Source of the DNA: Ascidiella aspersa
Taxonomy: Eukaryota
Direction of reading: 5' to 3'
Length of the DNA: 64,000 bases
NCBI GenBank assembly: GCA_963924565.1
Contig: OZ004612.1
Span: 13,020,001 to 13,084,000 of the forward strand
Position numbers and translations under genes: made by a program. How positions within the stretch are numbered: position 1 is the first letter of the stretch; every line of letters starts with the position of its first letter. This document shows, piece by piece, positions 38,601 through 44,587 of the stretch. The notes beneath the pieces are model-generated. The model had not been told where the DNA came from and did not search any database. It saw only the letters and a list, made by a program, of their open reading frames with translations.

Positions 38601-39170
38601 TAATATTTTACAAAGCACTTCAATGGCCCATAGCGAAGTTAATGAAGACACAGTATACACCTGTACAGGTAAAGAATTAAAAATTAAAATTGATGTGCTC
38701 ATCATTTATTTTTTCTTATAAGGTATATATGTATGTTTGCCTTATTTTCAATGTATTGCTTTAACGATGTACTAAAATGAGTGATATCTCTTTTGTAATA
38801 TTTATATATGAATATTTATTTGTTTGTAAATTAAAAAAAATTAGCATAATTCAATTTTTTCCAAGGCCACCCCAAGAAAAAAGACATAGAAGATATCTTG
38901 GATTGGATGCTTAACAAAGACTTTACTTCGGCTTATCAAAGCGTAATTAAATTAAAGACTGAAAAAGGAATGGCACTTCAGGACATTTTGCAACAGGTCC
39001 ACTTGTACATTCACCGCATTGACTTTCCTGTCAAAGTGAGAATTCACTTGTTGGACAAAATGGCAGAGATTGAAGATCGCATTGCCGCTGGAACAAACGA
39101 GCGCTTGCAAACTAGCTCGATGGTGGCTGCTTTTCAACAAGCCAAGAACATGACTGCAGCTAATGCATAA
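35681..39170 (+). CDS. RFC5: Replication factor C subunit 5; exons 35681-35962, 37793-37960, 38431-38668, 38866-39170
   Basis: [10 protein letters not shown], Walker [19 protein letters not shown], Walker [22 protein letters not shown] motif ([13 protein letters not shown]), RFC5-type C-terminus. Confidence 0.95.
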
Positions 39171-39459
39171 CTTGTTATTTTAAACTAATGTTATTTCCTA
39201 ATTTGTGAAAGCAGATTGACACACAATGGTAATGTGGTAAAAACGTTTTTGTTAAAACACACATGAATATTGACCAACAAAGGCTATACTAAGTAAAAAA
39301 TGTTTGAGTTGTAAATCTGTATTGCCATTTGGAATTTTATTTCAAAATATTGTCGTTTGTACAAAGTAAGACTCGATGATGTCATTTGTGTATAACATTG
39401 CAATCATAAGTTGTTTTGGTTACATTACAATCATACCTTACTTACATTGCAATCTTAAG

Positions 39460-39491
39460 TTGCATTCAACCTTTATTTACCATCTTTTTAG
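39460..39491 (+). promoter_or_regulatory. Splice acceptor (possible SL trans-splice site) upstream of the ASDURF-like ORF
   Basis: cctttatttaccatctttttAG, 15 nt before the ATG at 39507. Confidence 0.5.
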
Positions 39492-39506
39492 AAAATTTTA
39501 ATAAGG

Positions 39507-39701
39507 ATGTCTGAGCAGGCACTAAAGGTGCAGCAAGTGTTGCAAAGTGAATTGGAAAGTCTAAAGGAAGGCGCCAAGGTGTATGAGCGCCAGCATAACA
39601 GCAACATACTTTTTCTGTCTAACAAAAACAAGACACTGTCTGATTGCAAGAAGTTACAAGCTGAAATTAAACAGTCACTGCCACCAAATAAATACACTTA
39701 A
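39507..39701 (+). CDS. ASDURF: ASDURF-like prefoldin-type microprotein (64 aa)
   Basis: ELESLKEGAKVYERQHNSNILFLSNKNKTLSDCK resembles the human ASDURF core as I recall it ([34 protein letters not shown]). Preceded by a pyrimidine tract and AG acceptor at 39490-39491. Confidence 0.8.
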   Translation: MSEQALKVQQVLQSELESLKEGAKVYERQHNSNILFLSNKNKTLSDCKKLQAEIKQSLPPNKYT

Positions 39702-39725
39702 AAAAGGTCACAAACTGTTGAGTTA

Positions 39726-42700
39726 ATGGTGAGGTTCATAGCTTCTTTTTCATGCCATTACTCTGGTAAAAAATTATTTGCTATGCTAAATCCCTTTTTG
39801 TTCAAGTCACGCACTGCTAACTCGCCATTAGCAATTGGAAGGCAAAAGCAAATGTATACTACCAAGCAGCATATGAAGTTATCAAAGCCACCAAATATTT
39901 TGCTTTATTGTCCAATGGAAGATCAAGAATCTGTTAAGACTTTGACAAGTTTTGTTGAAGTTTGTCTTGCTGCAAACCAGTATACTGTGTATTCAGTTAA
40001 CTCTGATGTATTCTACAATGATCCTTGGATTGAAACTACAACCCTCTTGGTTTTGTGGAATTCTAATTTAAATAATCAAAACTTAAATATGGTTAAACTA
40101 AATGCCAGACTTCAACAGTATCTTGGAGCAAAAGGAAAGATATTGAGTTTCATGCCAAGTGTGATGCAAGATGTGAAATTTTGTTGTGTTGAAACAGATG
40201 TTTCTAAAACATCTGAAGTAATAATGGATTGTGGCAATTTTGTTGTAAAGTGCTGGAGTGGTATTTACTTAGAACAAAATTTGAAACAAACTGTGGTTGC
40301 AAGAATTTTACATAAGGAAAGTAAACATATTGTGGCAACTATCAACTCGGAGAAGACGGTGGTTACAACATCGGTAAGAAAGTCTCAAAATTCATAATGT
40401 GAAGTTTGGAAACTAGTTTTCATTTTTATGAAATGAATTTAAAACAATAAACACTAGCTTAATATCTGTTTTTTGGGGGATTTATTTATACTTTCAACGG
40501 TTTATCCAGTTAAATTTTGGACACTACAAGTAATTTCAGTTGGCTATTATTAAGGTCATATGGTAATCTATTTGTGGTGCTATTTACTATAGCTAGTGCC
40601 GTTTAATTAATTTTCACATCCTTATAATTTCACATCCTTAAACATGATTGAAGTTCACCATACACCTACCTTGAAAGTATAACATTAAACTATAATTTGT
40701 TCTGTATTTATTTGTTAGCTGCCCCTGCTAGACTTAACACATAATGATGATGCTACTGACACAGTTAAAGTATTCAAGAGTCTGCTTCAAATGTTGATGA
40801 TTCGAATCAGCACTGAACAAGAAACTGTTGGAATATTAAAAAATACAAATAATGTTCCAGAGGGTGCAGGCTTACTTTTTGCCACTTCGATTAATTTACA
40901 AAACCAGTTTTTGTCATGGTAAGCAGCATTTACGTATTGTGTATCATGAGAAGCATTTTTTTAACAAGAGCTTTTGGCAATTCATAAAAAAAACTTTTCT
41001 TGAGGAGGCTTATAGAAGCTTTATATGTACACTGTTTTATTCAAATTAATTACAAAACTTGATTTTTTTTAACATTAATTCTTTTGTAAGAGATATTTAG
41101 GTCACTTTCACATAAGAAAAGCTTTTTTAAAGTTTTATTTTCTGCTATAGTTCAATTTAGTTTATAAAAACAGTCTTGCTTCCCGTAAAGTGTTCACACA
41201 TTTTTTTGTACAATCTAGGTTTAAACTTGAGCCTCCTGTGTACAATGCTGGAGGATTGAAGCTAATTCCTGCTGTGAATTATCAGAAAACAGGTTCACAT
41301 CTTTAAAACTTAATCAGTCATAATTCATTTTCAATGGCTGTTATGCTATAAAGAAATACAGCAGTGACTGTTTTGCAGATCTGCAACATGAGGAATTCTT
41401 GTCACAAAACAGCTTCACAGTTGGCTACTCTGCCAAAGGTGACCCCTCAGGAGAAGAAGGTGTTTGTTGTGATTTTAACTGGCAATGTTATAGAGATAAC
41501 CTGAAGTCCGATGTTTATGGGCACCATGTTGTATATGCAGATGTTATTGGATCCACTATGACTGTATTTGACGGGTTGGTCATTAATGTTCTATGGGTCG
41601 CACATTGTTTTTGATATATATACAACTAATGTCCTTCCATTTCTAAACAAACATGTTTTTTATAGGTTAAGTTTGAAGTTGCCTGAAAGGTCTGGAGTTG
41701 TTGCCATCGCCAAACAACAAACAAAAGGACAAGGTTTTTAGTTGACAAACAAAAAAAAACTTTTCAAATTATTATTTGTTAAATATAGTACTCTAAATGT
41801 GTGAAGAATAATCCTTTTGTTAATCAAGGTATATACAATGTATTTTAAAATGTTAAGGGGGTATATACAATGTATTTTAAAAAGGTATATACAATGTATT
41901 TTAAAAAAGCAAACTAGCAATTCTGGTCAGACACATTAACCAGATCTTAAAAGATATATATATATTTCGCCAACTAAGGCATCTTCAGTATATCTGAATA
42001 AAAACATATATACTGTTGCGTTTGTTTTTATTCAGATATACTGAATATGCCTTAGTTGGCGAAATATATATACATCTTTTAAGATCTGTTTAATGTGTCT
42101 GACCAGAATTGCTAGCTTTGCTAGATTATTTTGATGTATTTTGAAAGGGCAATCTTTGTATTATCCAAGGAACATTGCCACTTGTTTTAAATTTTATAGC
42201 TATTTATCTATTATTCTTTTCTGTTTTTCTTTTGTTATTACCCTTTTAATTAGAGGGGAAGTAATACATTTAATTAACAGGCCGTGGTGGTAACAAGTGG
42301 CTAAGCCCGGTTGGTTGTGCAATGTTTACTCTGGTTGTGGTGATACCTGTTGCTTCCAAACTTGGAAAAACCTTGCCCTTTATCCAGCATATAACTGCTG
42401 TTGCTGTTGTTCATGCTATTCGAGAAATGCCAGGTCTTGGGGTAGGTTCAAGCAATTAAACAATATTAGTTTTATATTGACGATACCGCTTAAGTGCTAC
42501 ATCTTTTTCAATATTTTGACTTTAAAACAAATGTTAATCACTTGGTATCCACTGTTGTCTGCTGAAGTATAACCACATTAACTTGGTAAAAACATCGGTG
42601 TTGTTGATAATCTAAAAACTTTAGGATAAGTAGTCAAAGGCTCAAAAAACACTATTTTAAAACTATCTACCATCGTCAAAGCTTTAGAATTAATAAACAA

Positions 42701-44587
42701 TTATAAAACAGCAAATAACAAATTTCTACTGGTCCTATTTTTCCAGGACGTCGATCTTAGAGTGAAGTGGCCCAATGACATATATTTTGGAAGTTCACTA
42801 AAGTTGGGGGGCGTCGTTGTAAAATCGACCATGTTCCGAAACAACTGTATTGCTTCAATAGGTGAGCTTTGCGCCAAAAATTTAAACTCGCCTAATAGTT
42901 CGTACTGGACTGCATACAGGTGACTGTTAGACTTACCCATCTTCCAATACACGACGACGTGATTAACTCTTCACAGAATTAAACCATGCAGAACAATTAC
43001 ATATTCAAGTGATAGATACGTTAATTTTTATTATGTATAGTTTCTGGAAGGGATATCCTACCATCAAGTGTCAAGTTGTAATATCGGTGCTAGTCCGACT
43101 AAAAGTGGTATCACTGTTAATCTGATAAGAAATGTTATTTCTTTTCTTACATAAAATTTTTGTAAGGGAAATTAAGGCCGCTTTTACACAATTATAAGCT
43201 TTTTAGCTTCATGTTGTACCACATTTAAATTTAGGTTGCAAAATAGTCTTGGATACCATTAAGTTAACACAATCCGCAGCGATACCATCTATTTTTCTGG
43301 CTGGAGAATAGTAACGTAATTTGCTTCAGTACAGATTACAATTTGGCAAAATATCGGGTTTCGGAAAACAATGTCGTGCATCGGACGTCCTCAATTTCTG
43401 AATTTTTTTAGAAGCTGAAATAATTTCGGTTTTTAACTGGCATCTGTGATATTCTTACAGGATGTGGCGTCAATATTGCGAACGAAAGACCTACAGTCTG
43501 TGTGAATCAGATTTTAGAAGGTATGTAGCAAAGAGTGGTAAACAGCTTTTTTACGATTCAGCTATGGATAATAATGCTTTGAACGAATTAAACTCTACTT
43601 TTATAGACGAATATCACATTGCCCAGAAGCTACAGACCGAAGAAGTTATTGCAAGAACTCTGACGGCCTTGGAAAAGCTAATTTTTGATTTCCAGAAGCA
43701 TGGCTCTGACCAGTTTCTTGAACTCTACTACAAATACTGGCTGCATAGGTTTAAAAAGGCTTTTTGCATTTTTAAAAAATACTTTAACTGGTGGTTGCAA
43801 GCTCGATGGCTTGTCCATGTAGTAATGTCCGTGGTAAAACCAAATTACTTTACGTTTTTACTAAGCGGTCCTTGACATGACAAAATTGCCGCGTAAACAG
43901 AGAACAAGAAAGGATGTCCTTTACTTTTTAAGGCGATTATGTTTGGTCAAGCGAGTGAAAAATAGCAAAAATGCGTTGGGAGCTTTAAATATTGTGCTAG
44001 CAGGCTATGGATGTCTGCTAGCTTTGGACGGAGCCGATACCCAATTGCAAGTGGTAGTATCTATACTCGTCTGATACTACTGTGGTATCCGTGGCGATAG
44101 GTAAACCTAGGCAGCGATTTCTGCCTTAAATGGTTAATTTATGAAAAAATGGTAAGTTTACAACAGACATAATAATTTAATAAACTATTTTTACACTAAA
44201 GCAGAGGGTATACCTAAACTGGGTAAATTCATCTGAACGTTGAGTGACATCTATTTTACTTGTAGAATAGCGAAATAACGTTATTTGGTACCAGATCGGA
44301 CAACGGAGTTTTTTGTCAAATTTCGAGTGTCGGTATCGGAATTAAGTTGTCAAGTATTGGCCATCGCTAGAGCTGGCAATTAATGTTACCTTCTCCTTTT
44401 CGGCAGCGGTTCTTACGTAAACGTGCAGCTGGAAAAGGGGTCAGGAGAAACACTGAACGCGTTGGTGGCTGGCGTGGACGACTGCGGTTACTTGAGGGTT
44501 CGTTTGGACGACGGCAGTGTGAAGACACTACATCCCGACGGAAACAGTTTCGATTTGACGAAGAATCTGGTCATTCCGAAACGTTGA
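39726..44587 (+). CDS. HLCS: Biotin--protein ligase / holocarboxylase synthetase; exons approx. 39726-40373, 40719-40918, 41219-41292, 41379-41574, 41666-41733, 42281-42441, 42747-42861, 43461-43520, 43607-43748, 44407-44587
   Basis: KPPNILLY N-domain motif, [21 protein letters not shown] biotin-binding loop, VKWPNDIY...[21 protein letters not shown]-terminal [19 protein letters not shown]. Confidence 0.94.
41827..41907. repeat. Three tandem copies of ggtatatacaatgtattttaaaa
   Basis: Read directly; abuts the left arm of the palindromic hammerhead element. Confidence 0.85.
41908..42133. mobile_element. Palindromic element with two divergent hammerhead motifs (HLCS intron)
   Basis: Arms of about 95 bp are reverse complements. 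Minus arm 41952-41995: AGAUAUA-CUGAAGA-U-GCC uuaguu GGC-GAAA-UAUA-UA-UAUAUCU. Plus arm 42034-42077 has core CUGAAUA. Confidence 0.85.

Follow-up and report, generated by a model that had tools for sequence, protein, structure and literature searches.

Is the conserved microprotein ORF that lies directly ahead of a biotin ligase gene in the ascidian Ascidiella aspersa translated from the mRNA of that gene, or are the two reading frames delivered as separate messages? In the window analyzed here, a 64,000-nucleotide stretch of contig OZ004612.1, a forward-strand ORF of 64 aa (39507-39701) begins with an ATG, ends with a TAA at 39699-39701 and is followed after 24 nt by the first in-frame ATG (39726) of HLCS. 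The sequence-only reading of this DNA had described the ORF as an ASDURF-like microprotein on a common mRNA with HLCS, and its coordinates, its distance from the ATG at 39726 and the motif ELxxLKxxxKVYxxQxNSNIxFL (which reads ELESLKEGAKVYERQHNSNILFL in the peptide) are all confirmed.

To what family the peptide belongs can be answered with some assurance. It matches the Pfam family PF21975 at 37.9 bits (E 1.9e-9; gathering cut-off 27 bits), with residues 6-56 aligned to profile positions 31-81 of 96, and a phmmer search of 1.84 billion proteins returned 68 matches at E <= 0.001, so that a chance ORF is not a plausible explanation. The relatives recovered by phmmer and profile searches carry names such as "ASDURF protein" or "ASNSD1 upstream open reading frame protein(-like)" and come from birds, rodents, amphibians, amphioxus, a hemichordate, sea urchins and molluscs. 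The top phmmer match, P0001 (1166 aa), was set aside as a tandem-repeat artefact. A word-indexed protein search with the peptide gave no match, and a PDB sequence search gave chance matches only (an LRR protein, BspA and FtsZ). In the family alignment, the invariant residues E15 and F36 are present and the near-invariant L16, K20, V25, Y26, Q29, N31 and S32 are all kept. No tunicate occurs among the named matches within the 44 homologue hits, in keeping with the earlier expectation that annotation would probably miss the ORF, and the ASDURF gene of A. aspersa is probably without annotation so far.

The predicted structure points in the same direction. An AF2 model of the peptide (mean pLDDT 87.2; H3-17, E25-28, E35-38, H40-57) has the topology helix, beta-hairpin, helix, and the first nine Foldseek ranks against the PDB are prefoldin beta chains, archaeal and human, with query-normalized TM scores of 0.66-0.78, rmsd of 1.0-2.0 A and E-values of only 0.05-1.1, which are modest because the query is short. 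The fold is thus predicted to be of the prefoldin-beta class, and from its sequence the peptide is expected to be a small beta-type subunit in the prefoldin-like module of the co-chaperone PAQosome/R2TP, where its partners would be PDRG1/UXT/URI1/PFDN2/PFDN6. The genome also has RPAP3_C-domain genes, candidates for the RPAP3 subunit of R2TP. The profile comparison proposed at the outset and a structure prediction of the peptide by itself bear out the ASDURF assignment; with profile, relatives, core residues and fold in agreement, we identify the 64-codon ORF, on the strength of its sequence, as a true ASDURF of an ascidian.

Compared with vertebrate ASDURF (ASNSD1-uORF, ASNSD1-SEP; PF21975), the peptide shows 38-46% identity to the members examined and has in common the ELxxLK...KVYxxQxNSN...F core and the prefoldin-beta topology. 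The human protein is longer (96 aa versus 64 aa), having an N-terminal extension that is absent here and a longer C-terminal helix, though many invertebrate homologues also measure only 68-85 aa. Whereas the human ORF is spread over four exons (PMC10187264), that of A. aspersa occupies a single exon.

A six-frame search of the 308-Mb genome with PF21975 found a match at this ORF only (35.4 bits). This bears on whether the ORF could be a functionless chance ORF or dead retrocopy, as might be suggested by its short, intronless form and by an SL-like 11-mer before the ATG together with an AATAAA and an A6 run at the end, which resemble a processed cDNA. However, the profile score exceeds the gathering threshold, the near-invariant residues are all intact and the fold is predicted with confidence. 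In addition, this is the sole ASDURF-like sequence in a genome that has RPAP3_C-domain genes, so that even a retrocopy would be a working gene; we consider a functionless ORF very improbable.

The partner gene is equally recognizable. BPL_N, BPL_LplA_LipB and BPL_C follow one another in that order on one strand (Pfam, exon by exon), by which the downstream gene is identified as the biotin protein ligase HLCS (Table 1). Its exon 1 scores 22.4 bits against BPL_N, just below the 24.2 cut-off, and gave no match in a word-indexed protein search. A glycine-rich motif that opens with QQTKGQG and runs on into the following exon as RGGNKW is what we take to be the catalytic motif, by comparison with human HLCS. 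The best PF03099 match (29.8 bits) spans 42274-42456, while a six-frame genome search with PF03099 found none because the domain is split over exons. Short introns do occur in HLCS, as one of 91 nt at 41575-41665 demonstrates, and the last exon, in an open frame that runs from 44384 to 44584 before its TGA, begins after an AG acceptor at about 44407. A genome search with PF00733 yielded three loci, all ASNS-like by their motifs, and ASNSD1 was not identified among them. In vertebrates the ORF lies upstream of ASNSD1; here the next gene is HLCS, and as the sole PF21975 match in the genome is the one preceding it, the earlier naming of HLCS rather than ASNSD1 as partner stands.

Table 1. Features of the ASDURF-HLCS locus (positions in the window).
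Feature	Position	Strand	Evidence
Last coding exon of replication factor C small subunit	38898..39170	+	Rep_fac_C, 84.3 bits
Three copies of 19-nt motif, core ACATTRCAATC	39395..39462	+	3 matches vs 0.13 expected
3' splice acceptor, TAG ending 39491, pyrimidine fraction 0.82	39470..39491	+	sequence, site scan
SL-like 11-mer ATTTTAATAAG	39495..39505	+	sole match to ATTTNAATAAG in window
ASDURF gene, prefoldin-beta-like microprotein, single-exon ORF	39507..39701	+	PF21975, homologues, predicted fold
AATAAA, candidate poly(A) signal, in ASDURF codons 61-62	39687..39692	+	site scan; use presumed
Spacer, 24 nt, two weak AGs	39702..39725	+	sequence, site scan
HLCS exon 1 open frame; donor GT at 40374	39726..40373	+	BPL_N
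Ambiguous 78-nt stretch: in-frame intron, ASDURF 3' UTR, or coding	39729..39806	+	site scan
HLCS exon, start of catalytic glycine-rich motif (...QQTKGQG)	41666..41734	+	frame continuity
HLCS catalytic exon (BPL_LplA_LipB), bounds approximate	42281..42440	+	PF03099, 29.8 bits
Open frame with further HLCS catalytic exon (BPL_LplA_LipB)	42630..42920	+	PF03099, 21.9 bits
Open frame with last HLCS exon (BPL_C)	44384..44587	+	PF02237, 28.8 bits

Where HLCS translation begins is less certain. The sequence-only reading had placed it at 39726, and an in-frame ATG is indeed found there, but it is only the first of four candidates (39726, 39783, 39852 and 39873); as BPL_N begins near residue 55, both this start and the 24-nt spacer are provisional. 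The first 64 aa of the HLCS frame contain no acidic residue and could constitute a presequence. Codon-usage log-likelihood is 0.03 per codon across 39726-39851 versus -0.03 in the rest of exon 1, and so does not discriminate between coding and non-coding sequence there.

At the junction itself, the spacer keeps the frame of both ORFs, with 8 sense codons following the TAA. Stop readthrough to an ASDURF-HLCS fusion was rejected as no fused homologue occurs among the phmmer and profile matches. Termination at a TAA is strong when the next base is an A, which also counts against readthrough. The two AGs of the spacer, at 39705-06 (AAG) and 39721-22 (GAG), are both poor acceptors, with pyrimidine fractions of 0.35 and 0.41 ahead of them, and to this extent the spacer was correctly described as lacking a pyrimidine tract. 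The accompanying statement that there is no room for a poly(A) site does not hold, since an AATAAA lies inside the last ASDURF codons, 13 and 29 nt upstream of the two AGs. An ATTAAA is also found inside the ORF, at 39666. Thus, where a uORF or bicistronic mRNA would call for a junction free of processing signals, this one contains the AATAAA of 39687-39692 together with the two spacer AGs that end at 39706 and 39722. Further downstream, acceptor-like AGs end at 39806 (pyrimidine fraction 0.76, AAG) and 39831 (TAG, preceded by CTAAC), and the first HLCS ATG forms part of a donor-like ATG/GTGAGG (39726-39734; break between 39728 and 39729) that agrees with 5 of 6 consensus positions. The stretch from this donor through the AAG at 39806 can be read as an in-frame intron, as ASDURF 3' UTR reaching a trans-splice acceptor, or simply as coding sequence; locally, there is roughly one donor-like site with 5 of 6 matches in every 180 nt and one acceptor-like site in every 150 nt. 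RNA folding of the junction gives nothing unusual in predicted structure (z -0.46), and no Rfam family was found at the junction or in the SL repeat unit.

What such signals mean depends on whether the organism trans-splices. A genome search for the Ciona SL followed by a GT donor (<=2 mismatches) gave 884 matches against 55 for a reversed control; among the matches listed all are exact, and many stand in tandem arrays with a 584-bp period. The genome therefore holds hundreds of Ciona-type SL RNA genes, and SL trans-splicing should be available; the 16-nt SL sequence was checked against published ones (PMC1488885, PMC7986045). In ascidian genomes with Ciona-type SL trans-splicing, neighbors with so small a gap normally belong to an operon whose transcript is cut into monocistronic mRNAs (PMC1488885, PMC2760879), and the claim that both ORFs share one mature mRNA is, for an ascidian with these SL genes, not supported as it was put. 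Ciona has 1,310 operons comprising about 20% of its genes, in which neighbors abut without intergenic DNA and the upstream poly(A) site falls at the G of the trans-splice AG (PMC1488885, PMC2760879). All 19 of the 19 downstream operon genes with full-length ESTs in a 2006 study were SL-trans-spliced (PMC1488885). The 5'-most gene is single-exon in 60% of Ciona operons, and single-exon genes make up 38% of operon genes versus 15% elsewhere (PMC2760879).

We therefore favor, at somewhat better than even chances, an SL-resolved operon in which ASDURF and HLCS yield two separate SL-capped mRNAs. Their co-transcription is likely; this, the choice of sites and the splitting into two mRNAs we infer from the signals described. 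ASDURF would stand first in a Ciona-type operon made up of ASDURF and HLCS, or in the middle if RFC5 is possibly also part of it (RFC5-ASDURF-HLCS), with a single primary transcript spanning both ASDURF and HLCS. The 16-nt SL would be joined at the 39491 acceptor to give an ASDURF mRNA polyadenylated just after its stop, the site being set by the AATAAA at 39687 or, as in Ciona, coinciding with the G of whichever acceptor AG is used next. HLCS would receive an SL of its own, for which the best AGs are 39806 or 39831 with translation from 39852; alternatively, a weak AG in the spacer would take the SL and translation would start at 39726. The two proteins would thus be made from separate capped mRNAs, linked by shared transcription alone.

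Several observations accord with such an operon: a Ciona-like layout of single-exon ASDURF ahead of multi-exon HLCS; a strong acceptor at 39491, AATAAA in the last ASDURF codons and AGs at 39706, 39722, 39806 and 39831; no Rfam family or unusual junction fold hinting at internal initiation; and an ASDURF that, as a stand-alone gene in Arabidopsis, is not bound to a uORF position elsewhere. Other observations fit less well. Neither spacer AG (AAG, GAG) is a good acceptor, and since the better ones lie downstream of 39726, the operon needs either a weak site or an HLCS start at 39852. The latter would leave the 50-codon open frame 39702-39851 to chance (some 12% of randomly drawn 42-codon windows in this DNA contain no stop), and the donor at 39728/39729, if used, would pair with 39806 in cis and block trans-splicing there. 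AATAAA is absent from 16 of 18 Ciona operon upstream genes, yet present at ASDURF (PMC1488885). The operon rules applied are those of Ciona rather than of A. aspersa, and the 24-nt gap is measured from stop to first ATG, whereas the Ciona criterion of <100 nt refers to mRNA ends.

The same donor and acceptor can be read in favor of a mature bicistronic mRNA. In that case, one exon from the 39491 acceptor to 39728 would hold the ASDURF ORF, the spacer and the HLCS start codon, the 78-nt in-frame intron would be spliced out to the 39806 acceptor or retained, and HLCS would be reached by leaky scanning or by ribosomes that reinitiate once they have translated the 64-codon ORF, with ASDURF throttling the biotin ligase. 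ATG 39726 does stand directly before the donor, a pyrimidine tract and AG follow 78 nt on (a multiple of 3), the frame is open with or without this splice, HLCS has another short intron, and the spacer AGs are poor as acceptors; furthermore, an out-of-frame ORF (39583-39726) ends in TAATG over the HLCS ATG. However, the level at which chance could account for the donor/acceptor pair is roughly estimated as 0.1-1%, which is about as low as the prior for a start codon split at the end of an exon, and the 39806 acceptor is an AAG. A 64-codon ORF followed by a 24-nt gap would be expected to permit only inefficient reinitiation, and the A at -3 of the ASDURF ATG and the AATAAA ahead of the junction, which argues for 3' end formation there, also speak against a shared message. 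An upstream donor normally makes a trans-splice acceptor act in cis (PMC1488885), and vertebrate ASDURF is expressed from a bicistronic mRNA (PMC10187264; PMC13303939); on the other hand, unresolved dicistronic RNAs are rare in Ciona, at 11 among about 680,000 ESTs (PMC1488885). On balance, we hold a mature bicistronic mRNA to be possible but unlikely.

The region upstream of ASDURF offers a further explanation. The preceding same-strand gene, whose stop codon ends at 39170, encodes a replication factor C small subunit, presumably RFC5-like by comparison with the human sequence, and the spacer between it and ASDURF (39171-39506) is unique in the genome. All 3 window matches to ACATTRCAATC lie in this spacer, 29-96 nt upstream of the ASDURF acceptor, and the triple repeat is a candidate cis-regulatory element (promoter or trans-splicing context). 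One promoter here could serve a shared non-coding 5' exon, ending for example at the 39366 donor and spliced either to the ASDURF exon or to HLCS at 39806/39831, giving two monocistronic mRNAs without operon-type resolution, with ASDURF an alternative terminal exon bearing its own AATAAA; in a variant, HLCS would have a transcription start of its own, within the ASDURF ORF or immediately behind it. A donor-like AAA/GTAAGA at 39366 upstream of the acceptor, the AATAAA, the potentially regulatory repeat and an AGTAAA at 39292 that could end the RFC5 mRNA earlier are consistent with such a scheme, but the sites are all weak, single and at chance-level density, nothing supports the promoter, and a transcription start within a 195-nt coding exon would be unusual. 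In addition, the 39491 acceptor, which precedes the ASDURF ATG by 16 nt, is strong and unpaired-looking, and in ascidians an unpaired acceptor is normally trans-spliced. We thus regard a shared promoter as improbable and the 39491 acceptor as a candidate SL trans-splice site of the ASDURF mRNA, which, if RFC5 is in the operon, is also a candidate for the RFC5 poly(A) point.

Between this acceptor and the ORF lies the SL-like 11-mer ATTTTAATAAG, which ends 1 nt upstream of the ASDURF ATG and agrees at 10 of 11 positions with the 3'-terminal 11 nt of the ascidian SL, itself 16 nt long. It may have been left by retroposition of an SL-capped cDNA or may be due to chance; ATTTNAATAAG has 1 match in the window versus 0.86 expected per window. 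Together with the intronless ORF, the AATAAA and the A-run, the 11-mer suggests a scenario in which ASDURF was retroposed behind a former HLCS trans-splice acceptor, which would have brought the start codon of HLCS into the exon of ASDURF (ATG/GTGAGG), and a mature SL-ASDURF-HLCS bicistronic mRNA results. No target-site duplication was found flanking the ORF, and we give this history only a small probability.

Returning to the favored operon, its closest parallels would be those of Ciona intestinalis (Satou et al. 2006, 2008), which share with this locus the 16-nt SL, same-strand genes that nearly touch (here as measured from stop to first ATG), a single-exon 5' gene before a multi-exon gene, a strong, unpaired-looking acceptor before a small gene, and the joining of unrelated housekeeping genes. 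Unlike most Ciona operon junctions, that of ASDURF and HLCS has an AATAAA; it also differs in that its AGs closest to the HLCS ATG make poor acceptors and that the first HLCS ATG carries a good cis donor. In Arabidopsis, the ASDURF orthologue AT1G49245 is a stand-alone gene and not an ASNSD1 uORF (PMC10893143), indicating that the protein is independent of the uORF layout and making it doubtful that a bicistronic arrangement was "kept" in A. aspersa, as had been proposed. AT1G49245 has its own promoter and no abutting coding gene, unlike ASDURF-HLCS. A different parallel is the Arabidopsis biotin ligase HCS1, in which start-codon choice and targeting are reportedly under the control of a small uORF (Puyaubert et al. 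2008). HLCS here is similar in its several in-frame ATGs and acid-free first 64 residues, but the HCS1 uORF is short and regulatory, whereas ASDURF is a conserved protein. As SL trans-splicing can resolve polycistronic transcripts, uORF-type expression of ASDURF is not required.

These observations extend the list of tunicate genes by a conserved subunit of the PAQosome and indicate that the vertebrate ASDURF-ASNSD1 pairing is not kept in this chordate sister lineage. The locus also provides a test case of about 900 bp for whether a microprotein that is "bicistronic" in vertebrates is, in a trans-splicing genome, expressed from a shared mRNA or operonized. If the operon reading is true, this is an ordinary ascidian operon and the gain is chiefly one of annotation, whereas a true bicistronic mRNA would couple biotin-ligase output to translation of a chaperone subunit. 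Retroposition, if true, would represent an independent re-creation, with a new partner, of vertebrate uORF-type ASDURF expression, and would illustrate step by step how a single-exon gene can come to stand at the 5' end of an ascidian operon.

The open reading frame at 39507-39701 (+) spans 64 codons from ATG to TAA, and on re-reading the window we found its coordinates, motif and spacer sequence to be as the sequence-only reading had described them. That reading had also identified the product as ASDURF, which is borne out by a significant Pfam match to PF21975 (ASNSD1-SEP; 37.9 bits, gathering score 27, E 1.9e-9) and by the relatives, core residues and fold of the peptide. Translated in all six frames and searched with this profile, the 308-Mb assembly gave this frame as its sole match; phmmer against 1.84 billion representatives yielded 68 matches with E <= 0.001, almost every one between 60 and 120 aa in length. 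Cluster members and profile matches carry names such as 'ASDURF protein' or 'ASNSD1 upstream open reading frame protein(-like)'; those named span birds, rodents, amphibians, amphioxus, a hemichordate, sea urchins and molluscs, with tunicates absent among them. All of the invariant and near-invariant positions of a 38-sequence alignment (E15, L16, K20, V25, Y26, Q29, N31, S32 and F36) are retained, and an AlphaFold2 model computed from this alignment (mean pLDDT 87) has a helix/beta-hairpin/helix topology whose top 9 Foldseek matches in the PDB are prefoldin beta chains (query TM 0.66-0.78, rmsd 1-2 A). Vertebrate ASDURF is 96 aa long with an N-terminal extension that the Ascidiella peptide lacks, though many invertebrate homologues have 68-85 aa. 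A TAG at 39489-39491, whose AG doubles as the acceptor, closes the frame 5' of the ATG, and a further coding exon upstream need not be postulated. A non-functional frame is contradicted by these conservation data and is very improbable. The ASDURF gene is real and apparently unannotated.

ASDURF is paired here with a new genomic neighbour. By its domain content, the gene downstream is a biotin protein ligase (HLCS), in agreement with the partner named from sequence: with exons searched singly, BPL_N (22.4 bits, slightly under the cut-off, in exon 1), BPL_LplA_LipB and BPL_C all match 3' of the frame. The ATG at 39726, 24 bases after the ASDURF stop, opens a 223-codon frame up to a GT donor at 40374. 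An HLCS intron of 91 nt (41575-41665) with a weak donor, GG/GTTGGT, shows that HLCS makes use of introns that are short and whose donors depart from the consensus; in the intron between 41734 and 42281, short direct repeats, tatatacaatgtattttaaaa, precede a long near-perfect inverted repeat spanning about 41925-42115 (whole stretch 41840-42115). A genome search with PF00733 found three loci, all of them multi-exon asparagine synthetase (ASNS-like) paralogues (G000:C5:20568962-20571984, C3:22393807-22395593 and C6:22360798-22365580; loci L008-L013), and picked up none resembling ASNSD1.

The upstream same-strand gene encodes a replication factor C small subunit (Rep_fac_C, 84.3 bits) and ends at 39170; by comparison with the human sequence we call it RFC5-like. 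Within the 336-nt gap before ASDURF lie an AGTAAA (39292), a donor-like GTAAGA (39366) and, at 39395-39462 just 5' of the ASDURF acceptor, a 19-nt motif in three copies that share the core ACATTRCAATC, two of them also carrying the palindrome ATTGCAAT. The core is matched 3 times in the 64-kb window, where 0.13 matches are expected, and never outside this stretch.

Sequence signals at the ASDURF-HLCS junction and Pfam matches in HLCS
Feature	Position	Strand	Remarks
Strong acceptor, TAG	ends 39491, 16 nt before ASDURF ATG	+	pyrimidine fraction 0.82, site scan
AATAAA	39687-39692, within ASDURF codons 61-62	+	site scan
Spacer AGs	39705-06 (AAG), 39721-22 (GAG)	+	neither with pyrimidine tract
In-frame HLCS ATGs (n=4)	39726, 39783, 39852, 39873	+	
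Acceptor AAG in supposed HLCS exon 1	ends 39806	+	pyrimidine fraction 0.76; better than spacer AGs
Acceptor TAG in supposed HLCS exon 1	ends 39831	+	CTAAC before it; better than spacer AGs
BPL_LplA_LipB	42274-42456	+	29.8 bits
BPL_LplA_LipB	42630-42920	+	21.9 bits
BPL_C	44384-44584	+	28.8 bits

The 16-nt Ciona spliced leader (SL), whose sequence we confirmed (PMC1488885; PMC7986045), followed by a GT donor has 884 matches in the genome at <=2 mismatches, against 55 for a reversed control. All matches listed are exact, many in arrays with a 584-bp period, such as those in both orientations over >200 kb at G000:C3:5218799-5451030 (L006, L007) and those on sequences C1 and C2 (L002-L005). These arrays are presumably SL RNA genes; Rfam gave no match to the repeat unit, and the Ciona Sm motif AGCUUUGG was not found in the 100 bases after the SL, and an AUUUUUG lies about 65 nt past the donor. 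These repeats mark A. aspersa as an ascidian equipped for trans-splicing of the Ciona type, which shifts what is to be expected beforehand of any two closely spaced genes on the same strand. In Ciona, 1,310 operons hold about one fifth of all genes; adjacent cistrons abut with zero intergenic DNA, upstream poly(A) falls at the G of the downstream trans-splice AG, and downstream genes carry the SL (PMC1488885; PMC2760879). The 5'-most gene is single-exon in 60% of Ciona operons (PMC2760879), and ASDURF ahead of multi-exon HLCS has the same layout.

An SL-resolved operon yielding two monocistronic mRNAs would thus fit as the default for such an ascidian pair, with a single-exon front gene, a strong acceptor before ASDURF and a poly(A) signal, and we give it a somewhat better than even chance. 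The spacer had been judged too short for a poly(A) site, which the AATAAA in ASDURF's last codons contradicts, while the reported lack of a pyrimidine tract holds at both of its AGs. The operon has its weak point between the ASDURF stop and the ATG at 39726, where a convincing acceptor is lacking, so that HLCS would have to be either trans-spliced at a poor spacer AG or started at 39852. Initiation at 39852 or 39873 would leave the enzyme complete, because BPL_N begins near residue 55 counted from 39726. Acidic residues are absent from the first 64 amino acids encoded from 39726, which could serve as a targeting presequence or, equally, be translated T-rich non-coding sequence; codon statistics on this N-terminal frame gave no decision.

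The sequence-only reading had instead proposed a mature bicistronic ASDURF-HLCS mRNA, which we rate as less probable. GTGAGG directly after the ATG at 39726 is a good 5' splice site, and 39729-39806 measures 78 nt, a multiple of three and a plausible intron size given the 91-nt HLCS intron. Should an exon really end at ATG/GTGAGG, the ASDURF exon would contain the HLCS start codon, and the acceptor ending at 39806 would serve in cis, not for the SL. However, donor-like and acceptor-like sites of similar quality turn up here every 150-180 nt or so, and this pair may therefore be chance; reinitiation is expected to be poor when a 64-codon frame is followed by a gap of only 24 nt, and dicistronic RNAs that stay unresolved are rare in Ciona (PMC1488885). 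The operon and the bicistronic mRNA may also coexist, since in Ciona the first cis acceptor is often trans-spliced when its paired donor is weak (PMC11155486). Less probable still is that the two genes share a promoter or 5' exon and part by alternative splicing and polyadenylation, or that an internal start site is used.

Several further features lie at the junction. ASDURF and the HLCS exon-1 frame share a reading frame across 39507-40397 (39726-39507 = 219), with a single TAA (39699-39701) plus 8 sense codons between them; this is likely a one-in-three coincidence, and no fused homologue was seen. An out-of-frame 47-codon frame inside ASDURF (39583-39726) has a TAA overlapping the HLCS ATG (TAATG), as in stop-start coupled translation, probably by chance. 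One nucleotide before the ASDURF ATG, ATTTTAATAAG (39495-39505) is identical at 10/11 positions to the last 11 nt of the SL, the sole such match in the 64-kb window, where 0.86 are expected. A retroposed cDNA could have left it behind as a relic SL; a target-site duplication around the frame was not found.

Overall, an ordinary ascidian operon, which may include RFC5 as a further cistron, is the likelier class of explanation, ahead of the proposed uORF mechanism. The locus adds a member to the ASDURF family and would, if the operon reading is right, add one to the operons of Ciona type.
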